Assembly: GCA_016748015.1 (NCBI GenBank) | Contig: JAAOMT010000436.1 | Location: forward strand, 1,548,847-1,612,846 | Length of the DNA: 64,000 nucleotides | Source of the DNA: Geosiphon pyriformis uo1 | Taxonomy: Eukaryota; Fungi; Glomeromycota | Direction of reading: 5' to 3' | Shown here: in pieces, positions 13,619 through 54,646 of the stretch | Position numbering within the stretch: the stretch's first letter is position 1 | How the letters are laid out: every line of letters starts with the position of its first letter | Program-made: the position numbers and the translations under genes | Notes under the pieces: model-generated | The model's database searches: none | Seen by the model: only the letters and a program-made list of their open reading frames with translations | What the model was told of the DNA's origin: nothing

Positions 13619-14687
13619 ATGTTAAAATCGCAAACCAAAAATACAATATGTTTTACTCTTTACATATGGTTAAATTTAAGGAAATTGAAAGTAGGTAGGC
13701 TATCACAAATTCCGTTTTCAGAAGAGAAAATTTTTCATCAACTAATTTAATTTTTACTATCAGTTAGCACTTCCCAGGAATAATCTATTATTAATGAATC
13801 GAACACTTAGAAATACAAAAAATCCTTTATTAAGGGATAAAAATATTTCTTGCCCACAATATTCTCAGAAGTGGAGCCTTGAAGAAATTAAAGCCCTATT
13901 TGAGGAGCACGAAGAGTATGGTTCAAAATGGGAAATAATTTCGCAAAAACACTTTCCATTAAGAACAGTAGAGGCTCTTCAGTCTAAATGGCATCGTTTA
14001 ACAGCTAGTCTATTAGAAATTAATAATAATGTGAACCTAAACGCAAAGAAGTGGAAACCAGAAGAAGATAAAGAATTGTACTCAGCTGCTAAAAGCTATA
14101 AAAAAAACAACAAAGTTGATTGGAAAGGTATTTTATCAACTGGCCATTTCCCTGGAAGAAGTAGTGAAGATTTATGTCGACGATATAATAATGTTTTAGC
14201 ACAACCAAAACGCGGCCCATGGACCAAGCAAGAAGATGAAAAACTTTTAGGCTTGGTGCAGAGTCATGGTAAAAAATGGAAAGAGATAAGTCATATCCTT
14301 CAAAGGCCTCTTCGTCAAATCAGCAAACACTATACCGAATACTTAGCGCCTGGAATCAAAAGGGGCCGATGGACTGGGGAAGAATTTAATGAATTGGCTA
14401 AAGCTTTTCAAAATCATGGTGAGAATTGGGAACAAATACAGCTATTAATTCCGGGAAGATCCTTACAGCAGATAAAAGTTCATTGTCGTTACTCACCAAA
14501 AGTTCAAAACTATTATAATAAGGGGAAATGGAACTCAGTAGAGGTAAAAAATTTAAAAGAAGCATTTGGAAAATATGGGAAAAATTGGGTAAAAGTCTCA
14601 GAGGCGGTAGATACAAGAGGTTTAGAACAATGTCGCACCAAGATGCTATCGTTGAGGAAAAGTCTCGTCAATAGGATTTGCATTTAA
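13619..14687 (+). CDS. Five-repeat Myb/SANT protein, copy A (exons 13619-13690 and 13764-14687; ~331 aa)
   Basis: Five repeats of W..EE..L......G..W..I......R....; GTAGGT..ACTAAT..TATCAG intron (73 nt) joins an in-frame 24-codon exon MLKSQTKNTICFTLYIWLNLRKLK. Confidence 0.88.
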
Positions 14688-15748
14688 ACATCACTTTCAA
14701 TTTTTGACACCTTACTTTATTTTATGATCTCTGAATTTAATTTAATCATCCTTAAATTTAAGTTTTTCTTATGTCTTAATTGTTTTTTAGTCTATTTAGA
14801 TTTAAGAACAATTTTGTTCCACGCATAAAAAATTTAGCTTTCTATAATTTAGAATATAATTTAGATAATAAGCTATGAAATATTCAGATTTAAAATAGTT
14901 CACTTAAACAAAACTACTCAAATCTTATTGAGATGAATAATTACATATTCAAAGCTTTTTAAAATTAAGATTTTTCCAAGAGTTTTAAGTAGGAATAGTT
15001 TGATGAATTTCATCAATATCATTGCTTTAGATTTTTGAAAAAGCTTTCATATATATAATATTTTTAGAAATAATTTATAAGGGTTGAATAAAATTATTTA
15101 CTCGTTACTGAAACTGGTTAACTAAACTTAGTTACCAATTTTACACACCTAATTTATAGATAGTAATAGGATATGAAAACATCAAGGTAGAGATAAACGA
15201 TATTAATTTTGAATTTTTTTTGTTTTCGGAAAAATATATACAAACTAAATATTAAATTCTAATTACAAATTTGTATAAAAATTCTAATTTAATAAATAAG
15301 ATAATATCTATTAAAATAGACCATAACACTTAATTTTTGTTATCGTCTTTTTTAAAAAAATTTGTAATTAGAATTAAGAGAGATCTAAAATATTAAGTAT
15401 TTAGAAAAATTATTAAAAGGATGAATTTTACAATCATTTTAATTAAAACTTATACCTCTTTTTAAATAGGTATTTATGGTAGATTAGTTTCGATTATTAT
15501 CAAGTAAAAAATAAATTTTCATTACATGTATTATATTAAATGTATTTTCAATGGCATGTATTAAGTCTGTTCAAATCAGTTGATTTATTAATTTTATTAC
15601 CTGTGAAAACTATCAATCGCACCTAAACAATGGAGTGATAAAAAGATGATCAGCCTCATGGGTGTGTATATAAATAGATATATGTAGTAGAAAAAAAATA
15701 TTATTTCTAATTTTCTTACTTTCCCATGTTATTTATCTCATTAAAATC

Positions 15749-16583
15749 ATGTTAAAATCGCAAACCAAAAATACAATATGTTTTACTCTTTACATATGGT
15801 TAAATTTAAGGAAATTAAAAGTAGGTAGGCTATCAAAAATTCCGTTTTCAGAAGAAAAAATTTTTCATCAACTAATTTATTTTTACTATCAGTCAGCGCT
15901 TCCCAGGAATAATCTATCATTAATGAATCGAACACTTAGAAATACAAAAAATCCTTTATTAAGGGATAAAAATATTTCTTGTCCACAATATTCTCAGAAG
16001 TGGAGCCTTGAAGAAATTAAAGCCCTATTTGAGGAGCACGAAGAGTATGGTTCAAAATGGGAAATAATTTCGCAAAAACACTTTCCATTAAGAACAGTAG
16101 AGGCTCTTCAGTCTAAATGGCATCGTTTAACAGCTAGTCTATTAGAAATTAATAATAATGTGAACCTAAACGCAAAGAAGTGGAAACCAGAAGAAGATAA
16201 AGAATTGTACTCAGCTGCTAAAAGCTATAAAAAAAACAACAAAGTTGATTGGAAAGGTATTTTATCAACTGGCCATTTCCCTGGAAGGAGTAGTGAAGAT
16301 TTATTTCGACGATATAATAATGTTTTAGCACAACCAAAACGCGGCCCATGGACCAAGCAAGAAGATGAAAAACTTTTAGGCTTGGTGCAGAGTCACGGTA
16401 AAAAATGGAAAGAGATAAGTCATATCCTTCACAGGCCTCCTCGTCAAATCAGCAAACGCTATACCGAATACTTAGCGCCTGGAATCAAAAGGGACCGATG
16501 GACAGATGAAGAATTTAATAAGTTAGCTAAAGCTTTTCAAAATCATGGTGAGAATTGGTAACAAATACAGCTATTAATTCCAG
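15749..16583 (+). pseudogene. Myb copy B, recent duplicate of A, truncated in repeat 4
   Basis: Near-identical to A; intron 15821-15892; GAA>TAA at 16559-16561; homology ends ~16583 where the ferritin-region segment begins. Confidence 0.85.
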
Positions 16584-16837
16584 ATAATGTTTAAAAATGT
16601 ATCATTACTAAAAACATTGAAGTTGCGAGTTTAAATTGCTATCTTAGTGATTTAAAAGAATAAACCTCAATTTTGTATAATGCTCCAAATTACTTTCATA
16701 ACAATAATCAAGCCTTTCTTCTAAATTTGGATCTATAAGTTTTTAAAATTATTTTTTAGTGCAATTACTTTTGTTGCAAAAATGAGAATCCAGAAATACA
16801 TTTTTCTCAATATCAAGATATGAAAAAACTTGAATAT

Positions 16838-17530
16838 TTATAATAACTTAACAGCAATAGAGGAGGAAACTAGCCAATAAGAAATCAAATCTAACCAAGT
16901 TTTCAAAATATCCAAAACTTCGAAGACCTTGTTAGAAATTTTTGGCATACCATCCTACTTGCGAAATTCTTTATCCAACTGACACAAGCCAATTCCTTCT
17001 TCCTGAACACGTCTGACTTGGCAAACTATGTTAGCCATATTTTTAACGGAGTGAGTTTCTTTTTCAAAGAAATTATCTTCAACCAAAGTTTGCAACGCCT
17101 AATCATTACATTTGTCAGCACACTCAACAACTTTGTACAAGTCCTATTGTAAAGGAGAATTAATCGAAATTATAAAAATTTCAAATTTATTCACAGATTA
17201 TACCTCAATAATACCTTTTTACAGTTCCAGAGCATTGGTCCGAGTTTCACTTGGGTTGATCCAAGTTTTAAAAGACTCATTTAAAATTGAGGCAAGTAAA
17301 TATAGTCAAAATCTGCTGAGCACTTACTTGGAGAGCTTGACAGTACTGCCCTGTTGAATTTAATACCCCATAAAAGCAGCGGTGTTAGCATAAGGCTAAA
17401 ATACTTAACAAATTGAAATAAGTTTTCAATTTTCTTACTTCTTAAAGCTATATGCAAGCATTTACCATATTAATAAATGCATATCAAATCTATCATGAAT
17501 ATTAATTTCGGCTAGGAGTGAATTTAAATG
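16838..17530 (-). pseudogene. Ferritin-like pseudogene, partial, copy 1
   Basis: Exon remnants FMGY*IQQGSTVKL / TNALEL*KGIIE / DLYKVVECADKCND*ALQTLVEDNFFEKETHSVKNMANIVCQVRRVQEEGIGLCQLDKEF match ferritin helices B-E. GT-AG introns; several stops. Confidence 0.8.
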
Positions 17531-17866
17531 TGATTTTCAGATATTTAATTTAACAAAAAAATTTATTTAGCAATAATAAATCTAATATACCTTAAAGATA
17601 TGCTTAAAAAGGTCTTTTATTTCACCAACAATAAATAATTTAAGCATTTCATAATTCTTCTGTTCATAATCATAACAAAACAAATTGAAAATAAAACATT
17701 AACTTTTTATAATTTGTCAAAAGTTTTAGTATAATAAAACTTCGTATATTAAAAACAATAAAAATAATTTTTTGAAGTATAAAAAAATCTAAATAAAATA
17801 TTGTTTAAATCTTGATCATGCAACTATTTATTTATTAATATATAGTCTTACTTCCTGATGATAATC

Positions 17867-18285
17867 ATGTTGTTAAAATCACACACTAAAAATTAAACAT
17901 GTTTAACTCTTTACCTTTAAGGAAGTTAAATGTAAGCCACTATTAATTGTCTTAAAAACCCTGTTTTAGGAGAAAAGTCTTAAACCATCTTCAAATATTT
18001 GATTCGATTTTAACTAATAGCTGATAATTCCCTGTAATAGTTCACTACTAATAAATCAAATACCAGAAAAAAGAATACCCATTATATCAAGGGATATTAA
18101 ATTTCATGCTCGAAATATCGAAAATGGAGCTTTGAAGAAATAAAAGCCCTGTTTGAGGCATATCAAGAGTATAATTCATCAAGAGTATAATTCATCAAGA
18201 GTATAATTCAAAATGGGAATTAATTTCACGGAAATACCTTCCATCAAGAACATTAAATGCTCGTTGGGAAAAATAGTATCTTATA
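17867..18285 (+). pseudogene. Myb copy P1: leader exon plus repeat 1, disrupted and cut off by a Tc1 remnant
   Basis: KWSFEEIKALFEAYQEY..KWELISRKYLPSRT with stops and frameshifts. The leader and upstream region match copy G in inverted orientation. Confidence 0.8.
18162..18209. repeat. Perfect 16-bp triplication ATCAAGAGTATAATTC inside Myb P1
   Basis: Three exact copies at 18162, 18178 and 18194. Confidence 0.95.
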
Positions 18286-18289
18286 CAGA

Positions 18290-18760
18290 CCAATTTATAT
18301 GAAAAATTTGTGCATATTATTATAAAGTGAACTTTACAACACGATCAACCATTAAAAGTGAACGAAAATTTATAATAGTATGGATGTATTAGCGGATAAG
18401 GTTTGAATAGTTTGTTTCATACCTTCTCATATGACTGGTAAAACATATTGAAGGCTTAGGTATAGTTTACACAATGATTATGACTGCTGAAAAAGCAATA
18501 TTTCAGAAAGACAATGCTCTAATTTACCAGTGCAAGCTTGTAAAAAAACTCCATGATAATTATAAAATTGTGACTTTTGAATGGTCTCCACAAATCACTA
18601 GATATTAATCCCATAGAAAATATGTAGTGGGAAATTAAGAAGTGTATTTACGAACACTATTTCATTAGAGGCAATTCTTTAATTTTTTTGACTTGATAAC
18701 CAAACGTGTTAATGAAGTTATAAAAAGAAAGGATTATGTGAACCATTGGTAGATAGTGAA
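18290..18760 (+). mobile_element. Tc1/mariner transposase DDE remnant
   Basis: IFQKDNA ~18498-18518 and EWSP..DINPIENM*WEIKK ~18579-18643. Confidence 0.75.
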
Positions 18761-18893
18761 AATCTACTTTCATTACATACATCGTGTAAAAATAATCACT
18801 CTCATTTTTTAATTTTGTGTATTTATCAATGATCGGGTCTTTTGGTCACGGAAATAAATAGAGATAGAAAAAATTTTTATGTCCATGTTAATC

Positions 18894-19949
18894 ATGTCAA
18901 AATTACAAACAAAGAATATAATATCTTTCACCCTTTGCATATGGTCAACTTTATGGAAAGTAAGGCACCACAATCTTGCTAACAATGAGGTTTAAGAGAA
19001 AAATATTCCCAATTTTGGCTCAGCTAATTTTATTTTTATTATCCAGCTAACACTTCCCTGGAGCAGCTAATCGTCGATGAATCGAATACTGGGAAATCAC
19101 AAAAATGCTATATCAAACGATAAAAAAATTTCTTGTCAGAAATATCGAAAATGGAGCCTTGAAGAAATCAAAGTCCTGTTTGAGGCACATCAAGAGTATG
19201 GTTCAAAATGGGAATTAATTTCACAAAAATACTTCTCTTTAAGAACGGCTGAAGCTCTTAAGATGAAATGGTATCAGTTAACAGCTAATGGAGAAATTAT
19301 TAATCAGAAACTTAGACTAAATTCAACCAAGTGGACACCTGAAGAGGACAAAGAGCTATACTTAGCTGCTAAAAGATATTTAATTAATAAAAAGGTTAAT
19401 TGGAAAGCTATCGTATTAAACAGGCTTTTTCCTGGAAGAAACAATGGAGATTTACGCATGCGGTATCACAATGTTCTCGCGTACCCAAAACGTGGCCCAT
19501 GGGATAAGGAAGAGGAGGAAAAACTTTTAAGCTTAGTGCAGAGATATGGAAGAAAATGGGGACAAATAAGTCATATTCTTCAAAGACCGTCTAGCGTGAT
19601 TCGCAGACACTATGAAAAACACTTAGCGCCTGGGATCAAAAGGGGCCAATGGACCGAGGAAGAATTTATTAAATTAGCTAAAGCCTTTCAAACTCATGGT
19701 GAGAATTGGGAATTAATACAGCCATTAATTCCAGGAAGACACTTAGATCAGATAAAATACCATTGTCTTCATTCACCAAAAGTTCAAACCTATTATAATA
19801 GTGGAGAATGGAGCTCAGCAGAGATAAAAAGTTTAATTCAAGCATTTAGAAAATATGGGAATAATTGGGTAAAAGTTTCAGAGATGGTAATTACAAGAAA
19901 TCGACAACAATGTCGCATAAAGATACGATCAAGAAAATGCTTTGAATAA
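18894..19949 (+). CDS. Five-repeat Myb protein, copy C; leader interrupted by TAA, intact 290-aa ORF from ATG 19077
   Basis: Exon 1 18894-18959, intron 18960-19046, in-frame TAA 19068-19070. All five repeats are open from 19077. Functional status uncertain. Confidence 0.7.
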
Positions 19950-20526
19950 ATACTAAACCTTTACAATGAGCTTCTATCGAATACTGTTCATATTGTGCGT
20001 GTTTATCTAATCCCATTTTAAGTTTTATAATTTATTGATACTTTACTTTTTTATAAGGCTTTTACGATCTGTGAATTAATCATGCTTGAATTTCACATAT
20101 TAACCTATAAGGTCTTTTTAGCCAGATATTTTAGACCCATAACACAAGTCTATTTACCTTACGTAAAAATTAATAGCATATAAAATCCTTCTCTCAATTT
20201 ATTTTTAAATTTCTTTCTTGAGTCTTTCTATGAGCTCAGCATCTTGCTAATTAATTTTATTATTCGACTTTATAACGTCTTGATATAATTCTTTATTAAA
20301 ATTACTTGAACAATATATTAGACTTGATAAATCTAATTTTAATCTAATTTTTTAAAATTAGTTATGCAAAGTGATTATTTATCAAGTGATCTATAATTTA
20401 GCCAATCATATTCAATTATGTGTTCAGCAAATTAAAATTTACATATAAAATATTCTTTTAGTCTATTAAAAATAACCATTTAAAAGTGTTGATACAGCCA
20501 GTGTGATGATTAATTATAAGTTTTTT

Positions 20527-21293
20527 ATGGCTGAGCCCAGTGCTTAACTCCGTCTCTATAGTATAGATGGTGAAAAGGCTGATAATAATTATATCCAATG
20601 CAAAGTGAATGTAAGCAATTTACTGTCTATAGTAAGATTCATTGGTAAAAATATTTCTCATTGAATTTAATTAACTTATTACTTGCTATTCATGATAGAC
20701 CTGATATGCATTTATTAATATGGCAAATGCTTGCATAAAAGATAATTTAGCTTTAAGAAGTAAGATAATTGAAAATTTATTTCAATTTTTTAAGTATTTT
20801 AGGCTTATGCTAACACAGCTGCTTTTATGGGGTATTAATTCAACAGGGCAGAACTGTCAAGCTCCCCAAGTAAGTGCTCAGCAAATTTTGACTATATTTA
20901 TTTGCTTCAATTTTAAATGAGTCTTTTAAAACTTTAGGAAACTTGGATCAACCTAAGTGAAACCTGGACCCATGCCCTGGAGCTGGAAAAAGGTATTGTT
21001 GAGGTATAATCTGTGAATAAATTTGAAATTTTTAAAATGTCGATTAATTCTCCTTTACAATAGAACTTGTACAAAGTTGTTGAGTGTGCTGACAAATGTA
21101 ATGATTATAGGTTGCAAACTTTAATTGAAGAGAGGGAATTGGCTTGTATCAGTTGGATAAAGAATTTCGCAAGTATGATGGTATGCTAAAAATTTCTAAC
21201 AAGGTTTTCGAAGTTTTAGATATTTTGAAAACTTGGTTAGATTTAATTTCTTATTGGTCAGTTTCCTCCTCTATTGCTGTTAAGTTATTATAA
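20527..21293 (+). pseudogene. Ferritin-like pseudogene, near full length, copy 2
   Basis: MAEPSA*LRLYSIDGEKADNNYIQCKVN / YAFINMANACIKDNLALR / AYANTAAFMGY / ETWINLSETWTHALELEKGIVE / NLYKVVECADKCNDYRLQTLIE..GIGLYQLDKEF, with GT-AG introns, stops and an internal deletion. The block ~20680-21550 is an inverted duplicate of ~16584-17500. Confidence 0.8.
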
Positions 21294-22437
21294 ATAGTCA
21301 AGTCTTTTCATACCATGATACTTGAGAAAAATGTATTTCTGGATTCTCATTTTTGCAACAAAAGTAATTACACTAAAAAATAATTCTAAAAACTTATAGA
21401 TCCAAATTTAGAAGAAAGGCTTAATTATTGTTATGAAAGTAATTTGGAGCATTATACAACATTAAGGTTTATTCTTTTAAATCACTAAAATAGCAATTTA
21501 AACTCGCAACTTCAATGTTTTTGCTAATGATAAATTTTTAAACATTACCTACGGATAATTACGGTTAGATCTAGATATGTCATTTCATCATGTCTAACCT
21601 GTGTTCTATAAATCACCGAGCAAATTTCAAAAAATTCCTATGAGCACTATTAACATCTTTTATTTGTATATGGTTCATGTAAGAAATTTTGACTTAAAAA
21701 AAGTTTAATTTATATATATTTACTTTTTAAACCTAATTACAATTTGAAATATTTAATTTCCAACAAGAAATTTTATTTCTTTGAAGAAAATATTGTGAAT
21801 TTTAAACTTTGGTGATTATTTTTGAAAACAAATAATTATTGATAAAAACTTCATTTTTAGACATTTAATGAAGCTATTGGCATTTTATCTTGTTACCAAT
21901 ATATATAAATCAAAATCATTTTATCAATAATAGAAAACTCGTTTATTAATAAATTTTTTCGAAATTTATATTCGGTAAATTAATAAAAAGTGATTTTATT
22001 CTTTCCCTAATTTCTTAATTAATTACATGATACTATTAGTTATTATTTATTAATAAATTTGATTAAACAGGATTTAGAAAATTATTTCGCTTTAGTCTCA
22101 TATTAATAATTTTAATGACTTAAAACTCTTTAAGTTAGCACCGCTATATAAACATGTTTTATATTTTCTATTTGCCATTTTAAATATAAATAAAAGATAT
22201 TTTGATATCAACTTTTTACAAACTTCCCAATCAATCGAAAATGAAAGAATGAAGTTCAAATAACTAATTAAAACTTATGACTCTTAAGCATATCTTTATA
22301 GTGTATTCCTAAATAAAACAATTTCTCAATATCATCTAATATAACCAAGATCTCCCTTATTATCACACATATAAATAGAGACCAGAAAAATTTTATCCCA
22401 ATTTTCTTATGTCTTATCTTGATCATGTTATAAAATT

Positions 22438-23507
22438 ATGTTGAAAGCGCAAACTAAACACACAATATCCTTCACTCTTTACATATGGTCAAATTTATCG
22501 AGATTAAAAGTAGGCAGGCCCCGAAATATGCTGTTAATATTTCGGTTTATAAAATTTTTTTACCTAATCTTGGATCCCCTAATTTATTTTACTATCAGCT
22601 AGCAATTCCCTCGAGGAGCCCATCGTCAGTGAATCGAATCCTGGGAAATCATAAAAACAATATATCAAGTGATAAAAAAATTTCTTGCCAGGAACATTCA
22701 CAAAAATGGAGCGTTGAAGAAATTAAAACTTTATTAGAGGCATATAGAAAGTATGGTTCACAATGGAAATTAATTTCACAAAAATACTTACTATCAAGAA
22801 CATCACGTGCTATTGAGGCTAAAAGCTATCGCTTAACAGCTAATGGAAAAATTATTAAGCAGAAACTTACCCTAAGTCTTAATAAGTGGACACCTGAAGA
22901 GGACAAAGAGCTCTACTTAGCTGCTAAAAGATATTTAATCAATAACAAGGTTGATTGGAAAGCTATCGTATTAACCGGGCTTTTTCCCGGAAGAAACAAT
23001 AGAGATTTATATAGTCGGTATCACAATGTTTTAGTATACCCAAAACGAGACCCATGGACCGAGCAAGAAGAGGAAAAACTTAAAAGCTTTGTGCAGAGAT
23101 ATGGAAAAAAATGGGCAGAAATAAGTCATATCCTTCAAAGGCCCCCTAATTACATTAAAAAACACTACAATAACCACTTGGTACCTGGAATCAAAAGGAA
23201 CAAATGGACTTACGAAGAATACAATAAATTAGCTAAAGCTTTTCAAACTCATGGTGAAAATTGGGAACAAATACAGTTATTAATTCCAGGAAAATCCCTA
23301 AATCAGATAAAATACCATTGTCGTCACTCACCAAAAGTTCAATCCCATTATAACAGTGGAGAATGGAACCCAGTAGAGACAAAAAGTTTAATTCAAGCAT
23401 TTAGAAAATATGGGCGGAATTGGGTAAAAATATCCAAGGCCGTAAATACGAGAAACTCAAACCAGTGTTGGAAAAAAATGGAATTCATAAAAAGGAGTGA
23501 TGTTTAA
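22438..23507 (+). CDS. Five-repeat Myb protein, copy D (exons 22438-22509 and 22599-23507; ~326 aa)
   Basis: GTAGGC..CCTAAT..TATCAG intron of 89 nt. The downstream ATG equivalent is GTG, so exon 1 supplies the start; five repeats are open. Confidence 0.88.
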
Positions 23508-30335: not shown

Positions 30336-31413
30336 CTATGACATCGCGGTGAATCTCTTGTATTTACTGTCTCTGAGAATTTCCCATATTTTTTTATAAC
30401 ATTGCTTTGAGTTTCTTGTATTTACCGCCTCAGAAATTTTTTCCCAATTTTTCTCATGTTTTTCAAAGGCATGTATCAAACTTTTTACCTCTACTGAGTT
30501 CCATTTTCCACTATTATAATAGGTTTGAACTTTTGGTGAGTGATGATAATGTTTTTTTATCTGATCTAGGGATCTTCCTGGAATTAATAGCTGTATTTGC
30601 TCCCAATTCTCAACATTATTTTGAAAAGCTTTAGCCAATTTATTAAATTCTTCATCTGTCCATCGGCCCCTTTTTATTCCAGGCGCCAAGACTTCTTCAT
30701 AGTGTCCGCAAATCGCACTAGATGGTCTTTGAAGAATATGACTTATTTCTGTCCATTTTTTACCATGGCTCTGCACTAAGCTCAAAAGTTTTTCATCTTC
30801 TTGCTTGTTCCATGAGCCGCGTTTTGGTTGTGCTAAAACATTATGATATCGTCGCCATAAATCTTCAGTACTTCTTCCAGGGAAATAGCCAGTTGATAAA
30901 ATACCTTTCCAATCGACTCTATTGTTTTTTTTATATCTTTTAACAGCTGAGTACAACTCTTTATCTTCTTCGGATTTCCACTTTTTTGCGTTTAGCTTCA
31001 TTTTATTATCAATCTCTGATATAGTACCTGTTAAGCGATACCATTTACACTGAAGAGCCGCTGCTGTTCTTAATGGAAAGTGTTTTTGCGAAATTATTGG
31101 CCATTTTGAACCATACTCTTCATGCTCCTCAATTAAGGCTTTAATTTCTTCAAGGCTCCACTTTTGGGAATATTGTAGACAAGAAATTTTTTTATCAATT
31201 GATAAAGTATTTTTTGGATTTCTAAGTGTTCGATTCACTAATGGTAGGCTATCCCAGGGAAGTGCTAACTGATAGTAAAAATTAAATTAGTTGATGAAAA
31301 GTTTTCTCTTCTGAAAACGGAATTTGTGATAGCCTACCTACTTTCAATTTCTTTAAAGTTGACCATATGTAAAGAGTGAAACATATTGTATTTTTGGTTT
31401 GCAATTTTAACAT
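30336..31413 (-). CDS. Five-repeat Myb protein, copy E (exons 31413-31342 and 31268-30336; ~334 aa)
   Basis: 73-nt intron nearly identical to that of A. The ORF-track start at 31238 is GTG; exon 1 MLKLQTKNTICFTLYIWSTLKKLK is in frame. Confidence 0.88.
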
Positions 31414-32445: not shown

Positions 32446-32512
32446 CGATAGTAATGTGATCTAATTCCTAAGCTATAAATAGAAATTTATTCACTTATTA
32501 TAACTTAAAATT

Positions 32513-32922
32513 ATGATTAAATCACAAACCACAAATATAATATGTTTTACTCTTTACATTTGGTCAACTTTATGGAGATTAAAAGTAGGTAGGCCACAAA
32601 AATTCCATAACAATTTGGTTTAGCAGAAAAAAATTTTAAGTTTACTACCAGCTGGCAATTTCCTCGAGCACCCCATCGTCAATAAATCGAATGCTAGGAA
32701 ATCATAAAAACGTTACATCAAGTGATAAAAAAATTTCTTGCCAGAAACATTATCGAAAATTGAGCACTGAAGAAATTAAAACTCTATTTGAGGCATATAG
32801 AGAGTATGGTTCACAATGAGGATTAATTTCACAAAAATACTTGCCATCAAGAACACCATCTGGTATTCAGAATAAACGGTATCACTTAATCAGAAACTTA
32901 CATTAAATTTTAATAAGTGGAG
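32513..32922 (+). pseudogene. Myb copy F: leader plus repeat 1, truncated
   Basis: Exon 1 32513-32584, intron to 32651, TGG>TGA stop in repeat 1, a short deletion, and homology ending ~32922. Confidence 0.85.
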
Positions 32923-33780: not shown

Positions 33781-33786
<6 letters not shown>

Positions 33787-33974: not shown

Positions 33975-34330
33975 AATTCTAATGCTTCTTTAGGCATATA
34001 TCTTCCAAAACTGGTCTACTTATTCGTACCCTTTTTAATCTTTGCTTAAACTTGATCCTCCGGTGCCATCTTCGTTTTTAACTAAAGCAATAAATCCATT
34101 GGAGTCTATACTTGTCATTCGAACACTAATTGGCATTTTAGCTTCACCAAAGTATTTTGCGTAGGCTAGTAGCGTGGAAGGATCTATGTTCATCTAAGTT
34201 ATGCGACGAGCCGAATGTAATGTAAGTGAATCTATAATGTCATTGGGATTTTAAGATTTTTGACGATGCATCTTTATCAAGTGAGAAAGATTGGTGGTGG
34301 TAAAGAATCTCAGGGAATTTTTTTGTAAAA
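33975..34330 (-). pseudogene. DUF2470-domain pseudogene
   Basis: HSARRIT*MNIDPSTLLAYAKYFGEAKMPISVRMTSIDSNGF..RPVLED..KEALE, with a stop and frameshifts. Confidence 0.65.
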
Positions 34331-35362: not shown

Positions 35363-35379
35363 ATGAAGAAATCCACATT

Positions 35380-35417
<38 letters not shown>

Positions 35418-36501
35418 CATCATTATCATCATCATTATTAAAAGGAAAAAAGGGTGAATTTTTTTCGCATACATATAGTAGATTACCATCTGCAAAATAT
35501 GATTTTATACATGATGACGAAGAAATAGATAGGAATAATTTTCACCATTATATGATTCGAGCTAAAACTGGAAGACTTTTTGAGGCCCCTATTGAAGAAA
35601 AATTGAAAGAAGGATGTATAGTTTTAGATGTTGGGTAAGAAATGATTTGAAAAAGATTTTTTTGGAAATCTACATATTTTAACCCTCTTTTTTTCCCACA
35701 AAACTAAAACTCTTTTTATTAAAACCTTATCACATTTAAATATATTATTAGTTGTGGTTCTGGAACTTGGATACTAGAAATGGCGGTAGAATATCCGCAC
35801 TCTAGCTTTATCGGTTTCGATATCGCTAAAGTTTATCCACAACAAATAAAACCAAAAAATGTTAAATTTTTTCAGGCAGATATTTTGGAAGGTATAAAAT
35901 TTCCAGAAGAACATTTCGACTACGTAAAAATGCGATTTCTCATACTAGGAATTCCACAACGTTCTTGGCCACTAGTCCTTGACGACTTAATAAGGGTAAC
36001 AAAACCTGGTGGTTGGATTGAATTAGCCGAACCAGAAATAGTGTCTACCGTTTTAACCCCAAACTATCGTAGATATTTAACAGCAAGTAAGTAAAAATTT
36101 TTCTTGATTCATTTATTTTGTGAGTACAATTTTTTTTTCTTTTCAAAATAAATAAATAAATATATATATAATTTTTTTATTTCAAAGTGCATAAACTTTT
36201 CGTTAAACGTAAATTAGATCCAAACATTTGCAACAAACTAAAAGATATCCTTTGCGATACCGGAAAATTAAGGTTTATTGAAAGTGGAACTTGGGAAATT
36301 CCTATTGGAAACATTGCCGATGAATTAGGTCAATTTAATGCCAGACATGTTTTAAATTTTGTACGAATTTATGGACCAAACCTTTTAGAAATTCTTGAAA
36401 TGAATCAAAATGAATGGGAAAACTTTTTCCCAAAGATTGAGGAGGAGTTTGAAAATTTGAATGAGTTACAATGTTATCATTACGTTTATGGACAAAAATG
36501 A
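35363..36501 (+). CDS. Class I SAM-dependent methyltransferase (fungal LaeA-like/Methyltransf_23-25 type); exons 35363-35634, 35752-36086, 36188-36501
   Basis: Splicing reconstitutes VLDVGCGSGTW; also FDYVKMR, RVTKPGGWIELAE and DDEEIDR. Canonical GT-AG introns keep the frame. N-terminal poly-Ser from (TCA)n. An upstream non-coding exon is possible. Confidence 0.9.
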
Positions 36502-37089: not shown

Positions 37090-38905
37090 CAGTCGGACCT
37101 CTATAAAAGAACACAGTTGGTACACGCAAATTATGTTCCATTTTAGAGGTGTTCTATTATATAGTTTTATAATTATTATCAAATAAACTATATTTATTTA
37201 TTAAATCAATCAATTATTATTATTATTATTCTTATTAAATTATTGATTAATTTTTACCTGTTTTTTAGAATTTTCCTTCATTTTTTTGTATTCATATAAT
37301 TTTTTTCGAAGTAAATTTTGGTTTTCTATACTAAAATTTTCTTTTGCTAATTGCTCTTCAAATCTAATTACCTTTTTTAATGCTTCATATGCTTCTGTAA
37401 TTGTAATTAAAGCAGGTGGAGATTTTTCTAATTCTTCTTCTGAGTCATTAATTTTATTGGTTTCAATTTGAGCATCGGCTAAAACTATATCTACAATTTC
37501 ATTATTATCAAGAATATTTTCAGTTGCCAATAATTCATCAACTGCTACAGTATAATCTTCGAGATTTTTGACCAATTGTTGTGCATTTGATGGTAAATTG
37601 TTNNNNNNNNNNNNNNNNNNNNNNNNNNNNNNNNNNNNNNNNNNNNNNNNNNNNNNNNNNNNNNNNNNNNNNNNNNNNNNNNNNNNNNNNNNNNNNNNNN
37701 NNNNNNNNNNNNNNNNNNNNNNNNNNNNNNNNNNNNNNNNNNNNNNNNNNNNNNNNNNNNNNNNNNNNNNNNNNNNNNNNNNNNNNNNNNNNNNNNNNNN
37801 NNNNNNNNNNNNNNNNNNNNNNNNNNNNNNNNNNNNNNNNNNNNNNNNNNNNNNNNNNNNNNNNNNNNNNNNNNNNNNNNNNNNNNNNNNNNNNNNNNNN
37901 NNNNNNNNNNNNNNNNNNNNNNNNNNNNNNNNNNNNNNNNNNNNNNNNNNNNNNNNNNNNNNNNNNNNNNNNNNNNNNNNNNNNNNNNNNNNNNNNNNNN
38001 NNNNNNNNNNNNNNNNGCATTATATATGTCAGCAGGATCAAATTCGGATATAATGGTTTTTAATTTTCTTCATTCTTCTGGTAAACTTTTAGTTGATACA
38101 CTTTCTGCTTCACCATGAAATCGGTAAACACGTAACTGGTTTCGTTTTTTGAATTTTTGAATCCATCTATTTGAGAATTGCATTTCATTTTCGTGTATAT
38201 CAAGAAGTTTGGCAAATTTTTTTCCTTTCTCTTTAATTAGTTGATCATTGAATTCGATAGTGGCTGCCGTTACTTGTTCTACCCAAAAACTTAAAGCTTG
38301 GTCTAATTATGGAAATTTAATGCTTTTGTGTCAAATAGATCTTTTTGAGATTTTATCAATTTCAATATTCAACCACTTTGCATGCTCTTTGATTATCTTG
38401 GAGACAGTTGGACGAGAAATATGAAGTTCTGGATATTTATGATTGAGGTAAGCTACAAAAAGCATCATTAACTGCTGCTCATTTTTGTTTTTTGAATAAA
38501 GGTTCCGACATTGTGATAATTTAGCAAGTCTGTTAGAAAATGTGCCTATAATAATATTAGATTTGGTTTTAGCAAGCTTGAATAAGGGTAAGTGGCTGTA
38601 CGTGAAAACAGACAAGATCAAAAAGAGTAAATCCAATGTAAATCGATTTAAAAGAAAGTTAGGATGAAATCAATTCAATACGTTCTAACTCTTTTCCCAA
38701 TTACCAATTAACATATAGCACGTGATATTTGTTCTTATATGAAGGTAAATTTCGAATAAACGTTTGATAAAATTATGTTCTTGTTCCTTTATAGTTTGTT
38801 CTTATATAAAGGGAAAATTGTTAATTAATCAATTGGTTCTATAGAAAAATCTTCTTTGTAAGAGGTTGTTCTTTTATCGATGGTTCTTTTATGGAGGTCT
38901 GACTG
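37090..38905 (-). mobile_element. pogo/Tigger-type DNA transposon, defective, spanning an assembly gap
   Basis: 23-bp TIRs CAGTCGGACCTCTATAAAAGAAC / CAGTCAGACCTCCATAAAAGAAC (2 mismatches) with TA flanks. CENP-B-like HTH FSNRWIQKFKKRNQLRVYRFHGEAES. DIYNA at the gap edge, acidic C-terminus in ORF 37240-37575, in-frame stops. Confidence 0.9.
37603..38016. other. Assembly gap (414 N)
   Basis: Run of N. Confidence 1.
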
Positions 38906-39044
38906 TATTCTTCTTTTTTTCCCCATTTCTAACAACTTTTTTGAATGCAAAACAGTTTAAATAAAAAAAAATTAATATAAATTTTATCAATAATAAAAAG
39001 AAAAAATATTAGTATCTGGTTTTCAATTCAAGAAAATAGAAAAA

Positions 39045-39275
39045 GTTCTTCAACGAGTTTGGTAATGTGAAAATTTTTGCTAATCGTATTCCCGCTATTA
39101 CTTTCCACCTGTTCTTAATGAAAATGTCTCTAAAAACTAAATGCTATTTGAATTGTTTACTTTAATCTATTTTTGATAAAGTTTCAGACAAGAATTTTCA
39201 CAATTTTTCGATATATTCTTAGTTTCATTAAAAGAATTGTGACTTAAAAAATAGTTTTTCTAATATCAATGACAA
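39045..39275 (-). mobile_element. Terminal fragment of the same Tc1 family as 32.2-32.45 kb
   Basis: Direct sequence similarity to ~32209-32440 (..GATAAAGTTT..CAAGAATTTTCACAATTT..TAGTTTCATTAAAA..AAAATAGTTTTTCTA). Confidence 0.6.
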
Positions 39276-40349
39276 CAACTTTTTTAAATTATTAGCTTAA
39301 TTTCGAAGATAAATTTTTAAGAATGCAGAGTACTTCTATTAATTGATAAATAATCTTAATGCTTAAAATATAAATTTTTGAAGAATAAGTTTTCTTAATG
39401 ATAAAATGTTTTTATTTACAAGTGTAGATCCTCAACAGTAATCAAAAATTAATAGAAATTTTATTTTTGTTATGTGATCTGATAAAATATTTTTTTGGAA
39501 ATTTTTAAAAAATATGAATTTCTTTAGCTTTATTTCATATAATAATCAATACCAACAGATAATTTACTTTGCAGAATTAAATTAAATAAAGTTAAAACTT
39601 TTGTGCAGTTTTAATTTTGGTGAATTCTTAAAAGTTATTACTTTAAATTATTTATCTTTTTTGACTGTAAAAATAAATGCATTAGAGACAAAATCAAAAT
39701 TAACTTTGTCTTTGTTGATTTTATATAATTAAATAACTTGCTGGTTTATTTTTTTATTTTCAAGTATATTTACTATAATAACAAACCAAAAGATTAAAAT
39801 TTATTAATAAAAATTGATAACTGTAATCTTAAAACATCAATAGAAATTTTTTACTTATTCAATTTGCTTTTGTTGAATTCTTTTTGTTTGATTCTTATTG
39901 ATATATAATAACTGTTTTTTCTGCTATCTGTTAACTTGTTATTGCAACTTGTAATAATATTTTCCACTGTCATTGCTGTTTTCAATCTAAATGAAAACCG
40001 ATAAATTCATTTTTTGTAAGTTCAAAACACCTAAATAAATGATGCTGTGCAATTAGATAAAAAAAAGAATAGATAACACCTAAAAATATTAAATGGTAAA
40101 CAATCTCAATTTTTAAAACAAATTAAGGTTTGACCTGCAGACTCAAGGCCTTAGTTCTTTATTGTTTTAGCAGACATTTAATGGGAAAAAAATAACAGGT
40201 TTTTTGAGCAAAAGGAAAAAGTAATTGTGATATTACTTAGTATCTATGTGTGTATGAAAGCTAGATATTTACTCTTGATTTATTTTGGTGTCAGAGCTAG
40301 AGTGTGAGAAAATTGCTGAAATGGCGTGATTTTTTATGTAAATTATGTC

Positions 40350-40825
40350 ATTTTTCACACTTCCTGTTAAAAACAGTTAAGATAGAATGGTATAACTTAA
40401 GAAATTTTTAATCAGAAACTTAGCCTAAATTCAAAAAAATTGACACCTGAAAAGGAAAGCTGTTGTATAAACTGGGCTTTTTCCCGGAGAAGTAATCGAG
40501 ATTTATTCTTAAGATATTATAGTATTTTGGCGCCAAGCTAGAAGAGGAATAACTTAAAAGAGATATGGAAGAAAATGATTCAATCCTTCAAAGGCCACTC
40601 ATGACGATTCTGAAATATTATATGATATAATTAGCGCCTGGGGTTAATGACAGAAGAGTCTAATAAATTAGCTACAGCTTTTCAAAATCATGGTGAGAAT
40701 TGGGAAAAAAACAGCAACTCGGTAGCGAATAAAAATTTTTATATAAAATATGGGAATAATTGGGTAAAGAGAAATTGACAAAATGTTGTGAAAAGATGTG
40801 ATTAATAGAATACTTTTGAATAAAA
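40350..40825 (+). pseudogene. Myb copy I, collapsed by many short internal deletions
   Basis: Ordered pieces of all five repeats (CAGAAACTTAG..GACACCTGAA, GGGCTTTTTCCCGG, TTAGCGCCTGGG, CAAAATCATGGTGAGAATTGGGAA, TATGGGAATAATTGGGTAAAG) in about half the normal length. Confidence 0.8.
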
Positions 40826-41155
40826 TTTTTTACCGACAGACTAAAATGGCATTCTAAAGAAAATAATTTTTATTTGGGAATAATCTAACTAATCTACCAT
40901 AAATACCTATTTAAAGGAGACATAAGTTTCGGTTAAAATGATTATAAAATACAAACTTTTTTATGCGTGAACAAATAATTCTTAAAAATAAAAGACTAGA
41001 AAAATAATTAAGAAATACAAAAAGTTCAAATCTAAGGAAGAATAAATTAAATTCACAGATTATAAACCTCTTAAAAAGTAAGGTATCAAAAAATAGAAAG
41101 TTAAAGGCAAATCATATCAACCTAACTTCCCCCTCTCAATATTCTGTTATAAAAA

Positions 41156-42208
41156 TTATTCAACCCATTTTATCGATCGCACCTTTATGCAACATTGTTG
41201 TCGATTTCTTGTAATTACCATCTCTGAAACTTTCGCCCAATTTTTCCCATATTCTTTAAATGCTTTTATCAAACTTTTTATCTCTACTGAGTTCCATTAT
41301 AATAGGTTTGAACTTTTGGTGAGTGACGACAGTGGTGTTTTATCTGTTTTAAGGGTCTTCCTGGAATTAATAGCTTTATTTGTTCCCAATTCTCACCATG
41401 AGTTTGAAAGGCTTTAGCTAATTTAATAAATTCTTCCTCGGTCCATTGGCCCCTTTTGATCCAGGCGCTAAGTGTTCTTCATAGTGTCTGCGAATCACGC
41501 TAGACGATCTTTGAAGAATATGACTTATTTTTGCCCATTTTTTGCCATATCTCTGCACTAAACTTGAAAATTTTTCCTCTTCTTCCTTATCCCATAGGCC
41601 ACGTTTTGGGTACACGAGAACATGGTGATACCGCGTGCATAAATCTCCATTGCTTCTTCCAGGAAAAAGCCCGGTTAATACGATAGCTTTCCAATCAACC
41701 TTATTATTGATTAAATATCTTTTAGCAGCTAAGTATAACTCTTTGTCCTCTTCAGGTGTCCACTTATTAAGACTTAGGGTAAGTTTCTGCTTAATAATTT
41801 CTCCATTAGCTGTTAAGCTATACCATTTATCCTTTATAGCACGCGGTGTTCTTGATGGCAAGTATTTTTGTGAAATTAATCTCCATTGTAAACCATATTC
41901 TTGACGTGCCTCTAATAAAGTTTTAGTTTCTTCAAGGCTCCATTTTCGATTTTTGTAGCGTATAATTTTGGTATCCCTTGATATAGTGTTTTCTTTATTT
42001 TCCAGTATTTGCTTTATTGACGGTGAACTATTCCAGGGAATTGTCAGCTATCAGTTAAAATCAAATCAAACATTTCAAAATGGGTTAAGATTTTTCTCCT
42101 AAAACAGGGTTTTTAGGAATATTAGTGGCTTACATTTAATTTCCTCAAAGTTAACCATATGTAAATAGTGAAACATGTTATATTTTTAGTTTGTGTTTTT
42201 AACGACAT
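41156..42208 (-). pseudogene. Myb copy G, full length but frameshifted
   Basis: ATG at 42208; 1-nt deletion after APG (~41460); 10-nt deletion before repeat 5 (~41298); ancestral stop at 41156-41158. Confidence 0.85.
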
Positions 42209-42942
42209 GATTATCATCAGGAAGTAAGAAAAATTTGTTTCCAATCTCTATTTTATGTTCGCAGCGATACGGGCCGATCTTGCTTAATCAATCATATGAA
42301 ATGATATTATAAAATTCCTTTATTCATTGGGAGTTCATCTCAAAAGTTAAACTATTTTCTTTAGATGATATTGGCATTTTATTATTATTAAAGACTTGAC
42401 CAATTTAAAATCACTAAAAATTAATATCAAGATTTTAAAATTATTTCATTTAGATTTTTTTATACTTCAAAACCATTCAAAATATTATTTTATTATTTTT
42501 TAATAAAAAAAGTTTTATAATATTAATATTTTTGAAACATTAAAACCACATTGCTCAAACAGGTTAATGTTTTATTTTCAATTTGTTTTGTCATGATTTA
42601 TAATTAGAAGAATTATGAAATGTTTAAATTATTTATAGTTGGTGAAATAAAAAAAATAAAAGTTGAAATAACTAAATAACTTTTTTAAGCATATATTGGA
42701 TTTATCTTTTCCTAAATAAAATTATTTGTCGGTTAAAATTTTGTTCGTTAAATTAAATATCCTCTAATATATCTCAATTTAGCAAAATATACTCCGAAAA
42801 TATTTTTTAAATTCCGAATGTAATAGTAGTTATTATGATCAGTGGGCATTCTAAACAGCAAAAATGATCTCCCTTATTATCACACATAATAAATAGAGAT
42901 CAGAAAAAAAATTTCTTACTTTCTCACGTTGATCATAAAATT

Positions 42943-43828
42943 ATGCTAAAATCGCAAACTAAAAATACAATATCTTTCACTTTGTACATATGGTCAACTT
43001 TACGGAGATTAAAAGTAGGTAGGCCCACACAAATCCCATAAAAATAGTGTAGAAGAAAAATTTAGATCCCCTAATTTATTTTACTATCAGCTAGCAATTC
43101 CCTCGAGCAGCCCATCGTCAATGAATCGAATCCTAGGAAATCATAAAAGTGCTATATCAAGTGATAAAAAAATTTCTTACCAGGAACATTTTCGAAAATG
43201 GAGCCTTGAAGAAACTAAAACTTTATTAGAGGCACGTCAAGAATATGGTTCACAATGGAAATTAATTTCACAAAAATACTTGCCATCAAGATCACCAGGT
43301 GCTATAAAGGATAAATGGTATCGCTTAACAGCTAATGGAGAAATTATTAAGCAGAAACTTACCCTAAGTCTTAATAAGTGGACACCTGAAGAGGACAAAG
43401 AGTTATACTTAACTTCTAAAAGATATTTAATCAATAATAAGGTTGATTGGAAAGCTATCGTATTAACCGGGCTTTTTCCTGGAAGAAGCAATGGAGATTT
43501 ATGCGCGCGGTATCACCATGTTCTCGTGTACCCAAAACCAGGCCCATGGACCACGCAAGAAGAGGAAAAACTTAAAAGCTTGGTGCAAAGATATGGAAGA
43601 AAATGGGCGGAAATAAGTCATATACTTCAAAGATCGTCTAAGGTGATTCGCAGACACTATGAAGAACACTTAGCGCCTGGGATCAAAAGGGGCCAATGGA
43701 CCGAGGAAGAATTTATTAAATTAGCTAAAGCCTTTCAAACTCATGGTGAGAATTGGGAACAAATAAAGCTATTAATTCCAGAAAGACCCTTAAAACAGAT
43801 AAAACACCACTGTCGTCACTCACGATAA
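42943..43828 (+). CDS. Myb copy H, four-repeat form (exons 42943-43014 and 43091-43828; ~269 aa), possibly a pseudogene
   Basis: Intact leader and intron; stop directly after repeat 4 (HHCRHSR*); broken repeat-5 remnant follows to ~43885. Confidence 0.7.

Positions 43829-54601: not shown

Positions 54602-54646
<45 letters not shown>

Follow-up and report, generated by a model that had tools for sequence, protein, structure and literature searches.

The stretch of DNA analysed here (the window) covers 64,000 nucleotides of a Geosiphon pyriformis contig, C669, and contains, from 13.6 to 43.9 kb, ten loci of a Myb gene with five repeats, as identified by tblastn with copy A and from the ORF list. 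Four of these are full-length, two are 3′-truncated, one is frameshifted and three are short fragments. The initial annotation had estimated about 11 paralogues or fragments; the array itself was recovered, but the count is ten by these methods. The cluster as a whole comprises 15 Myb loci across 67 kb, 10 of which lie inside the window. Copy A (+ strand) is preceded by a conserved upstream region (13510–13618; GATC...TATAAATAG TATA-like box) that aligns among copies A, B, C, D, E, G and H, as well as group-2 copies on other contigs. This is followed by a putative exon 1 of 24 codons from an ATG (13619–13690), with an open frame and a GTAGGT donor after it, a putative intron of 73 nt (13691–13763) that has a branch-like site (CTAAT) and a pyrimidine tract and finishes with a CAG acceptor, and exon 2 (13764–14687), which encodes the five Myb repeats and contains an intact ORF of 297 aa from the ATG at 13794 (13794–14687). 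On the opposite strand, at 12375–12524, we found a 5′ relic (promoter and exon 1) with ∼80 % identity by blastn to 13561–13713, inverted, which is apparently the remnant of a lost copy that once stood head to head with A.

Downstream of A on the same strand, copy B (15749–16582) shares 97 % DNA identity with A and is 3′-truncated within repeat 4, its homology (15923–16582) ending at the equivalent of residue 220. In place of its 3′ end is a low-copy spacer repeat (16582–17500, + strand), with an inverted copy at 20688–21550 and matches at only 3 places genome-wide. A short fragment with the 5′ region and repeat 1 (17871–18303, + strand; tblastn and blastn) is followed by copy C (18894–19949, + strand; Pfam and tblastn), which has exon 1 from 18894 and an intact ORF of 290 aa (19077–19949). 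Copies D (22438–23507, + strand; homology 22629–23507) and E (30336–31413, − strand; exon 1 at 31413–31342) are both full-length with five repeats, and a second fragment of 5′ region and repeat 1 (32505–32900, + strand; tblastn and blastn) lies head to head with E. Further along are a short fragment of repeats 3–4 (40559–40769, + strand; tblastn) and copy G (41168–42203, − strand), a frameshifted pseudogene, as its homology (42017–41168) is split over three tblastn reading frames; its start position is ATA. Head to head with G is copy H (42943–43846, + strand), which has no repeat 5 and an ORF (43121–43846) open for 235 aa. The assembly gap, a run of N at 37603–38016, lies outside all Myb copies, the nearest fragment being 4.7 kb to the left and 2.5 kb to the right; a tblastn search of the window with copy A found no Myb homology abutting it, and thus no reading frame in the Myb finding depends on the gap. 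The ORFs flanking it had no Pfam matches, and no snRNA or other Rfam family was found within the window.

Copies A, C, D and E each encode five PF00249 repeats (E-values 1e-41 to 1e-50), and no other domain type was detected in them by Pfam. The proteins, which have a pI of 9.5–9.95, had been described as almost only repeats with no effector domain; Pfam agrees, although this must be amended for an extra N-terminal leader that is probably encoded by the 5′ exon. The frame of exon 1 is open in six window copies (pooled pN/pS 0.33) and specifies a basic leader without acidic residues, sharing a WLNLR motif with an Ambispora N-terminus. Intron length differs between copies whilst the flanks are conserved, and the putative acceptor of copy A is also used in the NCBI models of D and E. 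Because GTG stands where A and C have their ATG (22629 in D, 31238 in E), both would need the exon-1 ATG, at 22438 in D, and their status as intact thus hinges on the putative exon 1; in two group-2 copies the exon-1 start is ACG. In each gene, a TATA-like promoter would be followed by a short 5′ exon and, after an intron of ∼73 nt, a single large exon, and the product would be a small basic protein made of a short leader and five Myb repeats of c-Myb/SNAPC4 type, with nothing more.

Genome-wide, 75 matches merged into ∼50 loci, clustered and on at least eight contigs. The window holds part of one cluster of this family, which has been amplified in G. pyriformis. Intact five-repeat ORFs are present at 17 of these loci, two thirds being broken or truncated, which bears out the birth-and-death turnover proposed by the initial annotation. 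The duplicated unit is the gene with ∼200–290 bp of upstream sequence, the intron being kept. Judged from sequence, the same architecture occurs across Glomeromycotina as smaller families and is confined neither to the array nor to Geosiphon: it was found in Rhizophagus irregularis (‘Bas1p’/‘myb-like protein L’), Funneliformis, Acaulospora, Diversispora, Ambispora and Paraglomus. These relatives share the five-repeat layout, an ‘RP’ motif in R3, the R4–R5 linker and acid-free N-termini, but only a few distinct clusters per species were found (in searches that are not a census), compared with ∼50 loci in Geosiphon, and no member has a described function.

The helix-3 strings listed at the outset for R1, R2, R3 and R5 of copies A–H were all present in the ORF translations. 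Numbering positions relative to the third aromatic residue of each repeat, we found a mean column entropy of 2.34 bits at the 25 contact positions versus 1.05 elsewhere (Mann–Whitney p = 7e-12), and in every pair of the 17 intact copies at least 4 of 12 selected helix-3 sites differ (median 11 of 12). This variability is far from chance. Even near-identical pairs had been said to differ at contact sites, which holds only in part: between G and H, R1 −6 and R2 −2 are changed, and of the A/B replacements picked by eye from the translations, one (C128F) occupies a contact position and another three lie within the helix-3 region of R3. The selected sites carry polar or charged residues in 77 % of cases (mainly R, K, Q, Y, S and N) versus 59 % elsewhere. 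Positions −9 (a conserved Arg), −4 and 0 are almost invariant (omega 0.02–0.3), and thus helix 3 is maintained.

Selection was assessed with home-made codon maximum-likelihood code, rather than codeml or HyPhy, with branch lengths fixed from M0 (omega = 0.37). Values of 2dlnL were 64.8 for M1a/M2a, 51.6 for M8a/M8 and 98.0 for M7/M8, the comparison suggested by the initial annotation, with a selected class of omega 2.7–3.7 comprising 6.5–9 % of sites. Twelve of the 15 sites with posterior > 0.9 were at helix-3 positions −6, −3, −2, +1 and +2 (Fisher p = 1e-11). When each repeat was given its own tree, M8a/M8 gave 2dlnL of 55.8 and essentially the same sites, whilst the largest value in 14 null simulations was 4.5, versus 56 observed. 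Two independent subclades had contact omega of 2.47 and 2.44 (versus omega = 1, p = 3e-13 and 7e-8) and non-contact omega of 0.45 and 0.38, such that omega overall is ∼2.5 at contact positions versus 0.3–0.45 elsewhere. Tree-free pairwise counts gave a contact pN of 0.306 versus a gene-wide pS of 0.165 (p = 3e-8) and a local pS of 0.207 (p = 0.002), the excess over local synonymous divergence being modest (ratio 1.48). Synonymous divergence is higher near helix 3 (0.207 versus 0.146), and therefore some of the signal may come from imported older modules rather than new substitutions. By site models, subclades and pairwise counts alike, dN/dS is strongly non-uniform and exceeds 1 specifically at the helix-3 contact positions of all five repeats, which supports the central evolutionary prediction of the initial annotation. 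These positions, the base readers of solved Myb–DNA complexes, are under recurrent positive selection, whereas purifying selection acts on the scaffold: the aromatic core, Arg −9 and conserved positions −4 and 0. Sites L285 and S286 lie close to the poorly aligned C-terminus, which we count as a weak point. Recombination reassorts helix-3 modules between paralogues: the PHI test was significant (p < 0.001), also without helix-3 codons, and modules are common to non-sister copies. Recombination can inflate site-model tests, a risk that the controls above lessen but do not fully remove.

The selected positions are those that contact bases in c-Myb, WER and SNAPC4. WER reads DNA with K55, L59, N106, K109, N110 and N113 (PMC7145699), which in our numbering are −6 and −2 in R2, and −6, −3, −2 and +1 in R3; the base-reading residues Y389, D441 and S489 of SNAPC4 (PMC9652321) align with selected sites K178, V229 and E278. 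With c-Myb and R2R3-MYB proteins (1h88, 1mse, WER 6kks) the family shares the repeat fold, the aromatic scaffold and base readers at helix-3 −6, −3, −2 and +1/+2. Those readers (K, N, K-N), however, are conserved in c-Myb and R2R3-MYB proteins, whereas here they are the fastest-evolving sites; moreover, there are five repeats rather than two or three, and no activation domain. The family profile is colinear with c-Myb R1–R3 and human SNAPC4 Ra–Rd.

Taken together, we consider it reasonably probable that this is an amplified five-Myb family with diversifying contact residues, whose paralogues read different, fast-changing nucleic-acid targets. Paralogue-specific targets, DNA as the ligand and an arms race are what we infer from sequence. 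The five recognition helices of each paralogue would lie along a nucleic-acid duplex, each paralogue reading a different sequence, perhaps of the order of 15–20 bp. Lacking an effector domain, the proteins would act by occupying sites or by recruiting a shared partner. Copies are continually born and lost, and diversification would be driven by quickly changing targets. These would be nuclear mobile or selfish genetic elements or, as the presequence-like leader suggests, such elements in the mitochondrion.

This last version refines the explanation above and is compatible with it: nuclear-encoded five-Myb proteins would be imported, bind mitochondrial DNA or RNA and take part in nuclear–mitochondrial conflict, as a fungal counterpart of the Rf-like PPR clusters of plants. 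We regard it as a tentative possibility. In copy A, exon 1 and the start of exon 2 together encode 48 residues, none of them acidic, that carry a net charge of ∼+10, and in group-3 copies a contiguous extension of > 40 residues is likewise free of acidic residues; the open exon-1 frame, with its low pN/pS, and the need of D and E for its ATG point the same way. The first acidic residue comes at a median position of 25 among 18 homologues from Glomeromycotina and of 11 among 109 multi-Myb controls (p = 9e-4), N-terminal net charge is +4 versus +1 (p = 3e-4) and the amphipathic moment is higher (p = 0.003). These leader features are crude, however, and are also what one would expect of a nuclear localization signal or of a basic arm that binds DNA; the splicing of exon 1 is putative, the ACG start in two group-2 copies speaks against the leader, and a literature search found no mitochondrial Myb-repeat protein. 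The parallel with Rf-like PPR genes is in genomic and selective pattern: they are likewise clustered nuclear genes for helical-repeat nucleic-acid readers, with diversifying selection at nucleotide-specifying residues and recombination between paralogues (PMC5138203). They may also share an organellar leader, which here is suggested by N-terminal composition alone, but PPR motifs stand in place of Myb repeats, and Myb usually reads double-stranded DNA, not RNA.

It is unlikely that helix 3 is simply unconstrained, specific binding having been lost and omega > 1 being an artefact of gene conversion or recombination between tandem paralogues. The PHI result, a pooled pN/pS of ∼1.2 on contact codons alone, the raised local pS and the many broken loci would fit this, but in each of two independent subclades, neither of them saturated, contact omega significantly exceeds 1, the signal holds with per-repeat trees, contact pN exceeds even local pS, positions −9, −4 and 0 are constrained, and such large likelihood-ratio statistics are absent from null simulations. 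We similarly doubt that the variable face binds protein, whether as a SANT-like surface that docks histone tails or partners or as a decoy hit by an antagonist. SANT domains make protein contacts through this same fold, and selected sites also occur in R1 and R2. As SNAPC4 repeats Rh and Ra contact SNAP50, not DNA (PMC9652321), the variable face of R1 and R2 in the family may contact a ligand that is not DNA. Nevertheless, the proteins are strongly basic, the conserved positions −9 (Arg), −4 and 0 lie beside the variable ones, the residues at selected sites (R, K, Q, N, S, Y) are not hydrophobic, and the variable positions are base-contact positions in R3–R5, matching the DNA-docking repeats Rb–Rd of SNAPC4.

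Still less likely, in our judgement, are SNAPc4 variants that assemble with SNAPC1 and SNAPC3 and drive small RNA genes from diverged PSE-like promoters, much as C. elegans employs SNPC-4 at its piRNA loci. SNAPC4/SNAP190 (PDB 7xur, 7zwc; Rh-Ra-Rb-Rc-Rd) also has five colinear Myb repeats and is the closest solved structure and best full-length match by sequence profile and fold, the AF2 model (mean pLDDT 80) having 7xur_A, SNAPC4 in mini-SNAPc, as top Foldseek match (280 columns aligned); the alignment also takes in the R4–R5 linker and, in R5, the QC-type helix 3. The genome has SNAPC3 and a weak SNAPC1 match, and a SNAPc subunit duplication with new function is reported in a preprint (bioRxiv 10.64898/2026.08.31.747621). 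In contrast, the family lacks the N-terminal SNAPC1/SNAPC3 assembly region (∼300 versus 1469 aa), has ∼50 loci rather than one, and is hypervariable at DNA-facing residues that are reported to be highly conserved in SNAP190 homologues (PMC9652321), as well as on the R1/R2 faces that in SNAPC4 bind SNAP50; nor did any snRNA or other Rfam family match within the window. A separate single locus on contig C722 is a much better match to SNAPC4 Ra–Rc and c-Myb (E = 3e-29, one 198-aa exon), and we reject the array as the genome's SNAPc4 in favour of this candidate. That the genes are cargo of transposable elements, some of which (DNA transposons) encode Myb/SANT proteins, with diversity reflecting divergence of element lineages, is scarcely credible, even though copies are numerous, often broken and spread over several contigs: the copies form local tandem and head-to-head arrays, homology stops within ∼290 bp upstream and ∼160 bp downstream, the intron is kept, the spacer repeat is rare, and no terminal repeats, transposase, reverse transcriptase or partner ORF were seen beside them.

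The diversifying five-Myb family that we favour has parallels in other kingdoms. The KRAB (and ZAD) zinc-finger clusters of animals are tandem, undergo birth and death, and show positive selection at base contacts on a conserved framework. They too are modular arrays of small DNA-reading units, but of C2H2 rather than Myb type, in animals rather than fungi and without the five fixed modules seen here, and the KRAB-like effector domain is absent from the Geosiphon family. As in the zinc-finger and PPR families of animals and plants, predicted DNA-contact residues are here outpacing neutral change, on a fungal Myb scaffold.

In order to define the Myb gene content of the window, we combined a tblastn search using copy A as query with the list of ORFs, and found ten Myb loci between 13.6 and 43.9 kb, in a window with a GC content of 14–33 %. 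The helix-3 strings quoted in the initial annotation were all present in the ORF translations. Four copies (A, C, D and E) are complete, each with five repeats (R1–R5); in copy B the homology extends to residue 220, beyond which a low-copy spacer repeat takes over, copy H is without repeat 5, copy G is broken across three reading frames and the three further loci are short fragments. Head-to-head arrangements were observed for E and a fragment at 32505, for G and H, and for A and a 150-bp relic at 12375–12524, and the window itself (C669:1548847–1612846) is preceded on its contig, at a distance of 8–23 kb, by five additional Myb copies. Database searches with copy A gave hypothetical proteins of Geosiphon pyriformis, encoded on a 2.34-Mb contig, as the best matches. 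A search with Pfam detected five stretches of PF00249 in each of A, C, D and E, at 140–169 bits versus a curated cut-off of 24.4; no domain other than the Myb type was found in these four proteins, including any repressor or effector domain or PPR motif. The AF2 model (pLDDT 80.4) contains three helices per repeat and 16 helices in total, and the pI of the five-Myb proteins is 9.5–9.95.

The surroundings of these copies were also inspected. An inverted duplication of ∼0.9 kb (16582–17500 and 20688–21550, 89–94 % identical) takes the place of the 3′ end of copy B. The first part of the window (1–12000) has a very low GC content of 14–20 %, contains no ORF of ≥ 110 aa and has, as its sole tandem repeat, a short 12-bp one at 6980–7111. 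The assembly gap, a run of N at 37603–38016, neither lies within nor adjoins any Myb copy (tblastn with copy A), and the ORFs on either side of it, at 37240–37575 (−) and 38331–38636 (−), have no Pfam match and may be remnants of a single gene or element split by the gap. Within the Myb array, a class-I methyltransferase gene is found at 35363–36501 (+) as three ORF pieces, which are probably exons, and a paralogue of 46 % identity adjoins a Myb copy on contig C596 (L028:240–672, reverse-complement coordinates). The right flank is occupied by an array of class-3 lipase-like ORFs (46428–63751), a relative of which also adjoins a Myb copy on contig C507 (L026:105–708); as such ORFs stand beside Myb copies on both contigs, the two families may move jointly in segmental duplications. 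An Rfam scan of the window found no RNA family.

Genome-wide, the search returned 75 Myb-family matches, which we grouped by eye into some 50 loci, namely 13 on C669 (a count that leaves out two small fragments seen in the window only), 11 on C596, nine on C507, seven on C520, six on C788, four on C310 and one each on C692 and C654, the first six of these contigs carrying clusters. Uninterrupted five-repeat ORFs were present at 17 loci. Both ends of the 22.7-kb contig C310 (L038 and L064) fall within copies of one and the same Myb sequence in inverted orientation, which indicates that the assembly breaks at this family; it probably undercounts the copies, and the numbers given here are lower bounds. 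The public annotation of the five-Myb family is likewise unreliable, as the deposited 506-aa model P0002 (G9A89_003956, on C507) joins two adjacent copies into one protein. Telomere-type CCCTAA/CCCTAT repeats form the start of C669 (C669:1–60, L065) and are absent from the other contig ends examined; a subtelomeric location of the window cluster was rejected, since the array lies 1.5 Mb from that telomeric end. We also rejected an origin of the family as a transposon, given that the duplicated units are gene-sized, that the spacer repeat has only three genomic copies and that there is no partner ORF; among the traits of PIF/Harbinger-type elements, neither a neighbouring DDE transposase nor terminal inverted repeats nor dispersed copies were found.

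Homology between copies comprises the ORF and 180–290 bp upstream of it. When these upstream regions were aligned, a conserved TATA-like box was followed by an ATG-initiated block of 24 codons without indels and a GTAGGT donor, and then by a segment differing in length between copies, a CTAAT branch-like site, a pyrimidine tract and, 30 nt ahead of the ATG of copy A, a CAG acceptor. The alignment places the putative exon 1 and its ∼73-nt intron at 13619–13763 in copy A, with equivalents at 15749, 18894, 22438, 31413 (−) and 42943, and group-2 copies (one of the two subclades analysed below) from other contigs have an identical upstream layout. Copies D and E have GTG in place of the ATG of A, and their NCBI models share the same acceptor. 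Six window copies keep the 24-codon block open (pN/pS of 0.33), and the block has a WLNLR motif in common with the N-terminus of an Ambispora homologue; as judged from these sequence features, exon 1 is probably coding. Retention of the intron shows that DNA duplication, and not retroposition, gave rise to the copies. The leader was analysed exon by exon, with the short leader peptide used for composition. The N-termini of the Glomeromycotina homologues are acid-free, basic and amphipathic, significantly unlike those of 109 other multi-Myb proteins, and these features would fit a mitochondrial presequence.

To quantify selection we aligned the 17 intact copies by codon (261 codons, few gaps) and applied a likelihood program of our own, with GY-type rates and F3x4 frequencies, that was checked by null simulations. 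Across these copies the first two Trp residues of the repeats show little or no variation, and W, Y, F, C or M occupies the third aromatic position. Under M0, omega was 0.37, and models allowing positive selection were favoured in each comparison (2ΔlnL of 64.8 for M1a/M2a, 98.0 for M7/M8 and 51.6 for M8a/M8), with a selected class of omega 2.7–3.7 comprising 6.5–9 % of sites. A posterior > 0.9 was obtained for 15 sites, namely A34, Q63, S64, C128, R174, Q175, S177, K178, R192, Q225, V229, E278, R281, L285 and S286. Taking the third aromatic residue in each repeat as the reference point, 12 of the 15 fall at −6, −3, −2, +1 or +2 (Fisher P = 1 × 10−11), and positions −9, −4 and 0 are near-invariant. 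This contact set was drawn from known complexes; we take +2 to be a base-contact position as in c-Myb. The enrichment of dN/dS at helix-3 contact residues anticipated in the initial annotation was borne out, with an omega of 1.78 for the 25 contact positions and 0.30 for the remainder. A wider, less tuned set (−8 to +3) was enriched as well (P = 9 × 10−8), and a heavily smoothed, FUBAR-like grid returned seven sites with a posterior > 0.9, five of them contact sites.

Our own implementation of the PHI test gave P < 0.001 for all 17 copies, and was still significant inside each subclade and without the helix-3 codons. When a separate tree was used for each repeat, 2ΔlnL was 66.0 (M1a/M2a) and 55.8 (M8a/M8), with essentially the same sites. 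Two unsaturated subclades were also examined, group 2 (nine copies on C507, C520, C788 and C310) and group 1 (five copies on C669); M8a/M8 gave 2ΔlnL of 53.2 and 33.6, and the contact-class omega was 2.47 and 2.44, each significantly above 1, against 0.45 and 0.38 for the remainder. Under M1a, 14 simulations on the group-2 tree gave 2ΔlnL of ≤ 4.5. Nei–Gojobori counts over six independent sister pairs gave a contact pN of 0.306, versus a pS of 0.165 gene-wide (P = 3 × 10−8) and 0.207 in the helix-3 region (P = 0.002). Positive selection on the helix-3 face is well supported by these data, obtained with home-made code, but falls short of proof by the standard of published recombination-aware software. 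Silent change is itself raised in the helix-3 region (pS of 0.207, compared with 0.146 elsewhere; P = 0.015), and helix-3 modules are common to non-sister copies: R3 in loci L019 and L021, R4 in L017 and L022, and both R1 and R5 in L019 and L022. Together with the PHI results, the shared modules and raised local pS point to gene conversion or unequal exchange that would reassort helix-3 modules amongst copies. The 12-site signature is unique to each intact copy, with a median difference of 11 of the 12 sites, and R, K, Q, Y, S and N predominate amongst the residues found there.

The selected positions were compared with known Myb–DNA contacts. WER reads DNA via K55, L59, N106, K109, N110 and N113, of which five are conserved in other Myb proteins (PMC7145699); by our numbering these correspond to R2 −6 and −2, and to R3 −6, −3, −2 and +1. 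In SNAPC4 (SNAP190), the major groove is occupied by repeats Rb, Rc and Rd, and base-specific contacts are tied to Y389 and R445, the latter flanked by D441 and S489 (PMC9652321). Residues Y389, R445, D441 and S489 align with K178, Y233, V229 and E278 of the five-Myb family, three of which are selected sites.

SNAPC4 also provides the closest solved structure. The top Foldseek match of the AF2 model is SNAPC4 in mini-SNAPc (7xur_A, 280 aligned columns), and in the family profile R2–R5 are colinear with human SNAPC4 Ra–Rd and R2–R4 with c-Myb R1–R3. The four and a half colinear repeats of SNAPC4 (Rh to Rd) have their counterpart in the family, profile positions 74–279 aligning with SNAPC4 290–496. 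However, the family lacks the N-terminal assembly region for SNAPC1 and SNAPC3, the ∼25–60 residues before repeat 1 having no similarity to SNAPC4, and whilst the DNA-facing residues of SNAPC4 are reported to be conserved, the family equivalents of Y389, D441 and S489 are positively selected. Moreover, a nematode SNAPC4 query ranked contigs C729 and C722 first in the genome. Matches to c-Myb and SNAPC4 span three Myb repeats of the C729 ORF, with weak zinc-finger matches in addition, and the C722 exon matches SNAPC4 Ra–Rc and c-Myb (E = 3 × 10−29). Given the missing assembly region and these better matches, we rejected the family as the SNAPc4 orthologue of the genome. The true SNAPc4/c-Myb-type gene of Geosiphon is likely that at C722:1088401–1088847 (L049), seen as an exon carrying an Rb-like insertion. 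The genome also encodes SNAPC3, likely in the multi-exon gene at C610:254373–255233 (L051 and L052), and the SNAPC1 match is weak. A 752-aa ORF (L050) and the Calcarisporiella protein P0072 were considered as clues to the origin of the family and set aside as other, uninformative multi-Myb proteins.

When 1.8 billion representative proteins were searched with a profile, supplemented by name look-ups, the same five-repeat proteins were located in many Glomeromycotina genera, namely Ambispora, Diversispora, Acaulospora, Funneliformis, Rhizophagus, Paraglomus, Gigaspora, Cetraspora and Entrophospora. In Funneliformis, adjacent five-Myb genes occur on one contig. A relative (P0067) is carried by a 6.6-kb Logan contig; copy counts in other AM fungi come from an alignment-based word search and are incomplete. 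Our literature searches found no earlier description of the five-Myb family and nothing relevant on Myb expansion in Glomeromycotina, selection on the Myb recognition helix or mitochondrial Myb proteins.

Modular nucleic-acid readers under diversifying selection at their base-reading residues, such as the C2H2 zinc fingers of animals and the PPR proteins of plants, are a hallmark of genetic conflict with transposons or organelles. In the five-Myb family the residues kept in the framework appear to be phosphate-type, and the putative base-reader positions change faster than silent sites. A conserved framework, fast turnover of base readers, module shuffling, tandem arrays and many dead copies are together what would be expected of a family that recognises nucleic acids and follows targets as they change. 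That DNA is the ligand and that the five repeats dock on it we infer, as we do the compartment of action and the opposing element. KRAB-ZNF clusters would work alike, and share with the family their tandem clusters, birth-and-death turnover and positive selection at base-contact residues; in contrast, their repressor/effector domain is absent here. The evolutionary pattern also matches that of Rf-like PPR clusters (PMC5138203), of which the family, without PPR motifs, is not a member. It is conceivable, although in our judgement unlikely, that Glomeromycotina have a new class of nuclear-encoded, mitochondrion-imported five-Myb proteins reading organellar nucleic acid, and that its expansion in Geosiphon to a recombining, selected array of ∼50 loci is the Myb-based counterpart of Rf-like PPR proteins in nuclear–mitochondrial conflict.

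The recognition helix of Myb proteins is normally amongst the most conserved of protein parts, and the signature of diversifying readers is now found on another scaffold, the Myb repeat. We know of no mitochondrial Myb-repeat family, and if the leader is a true presequence this would be the first known to us. The host belongs to an early-diverging fungal lineage in which genome defence and nuclear–organelle conflict are little known, and the array holds naturally occurring variants at defined positions in five linked Myb repeats, from which a Myb recognition code may be read by experiment.
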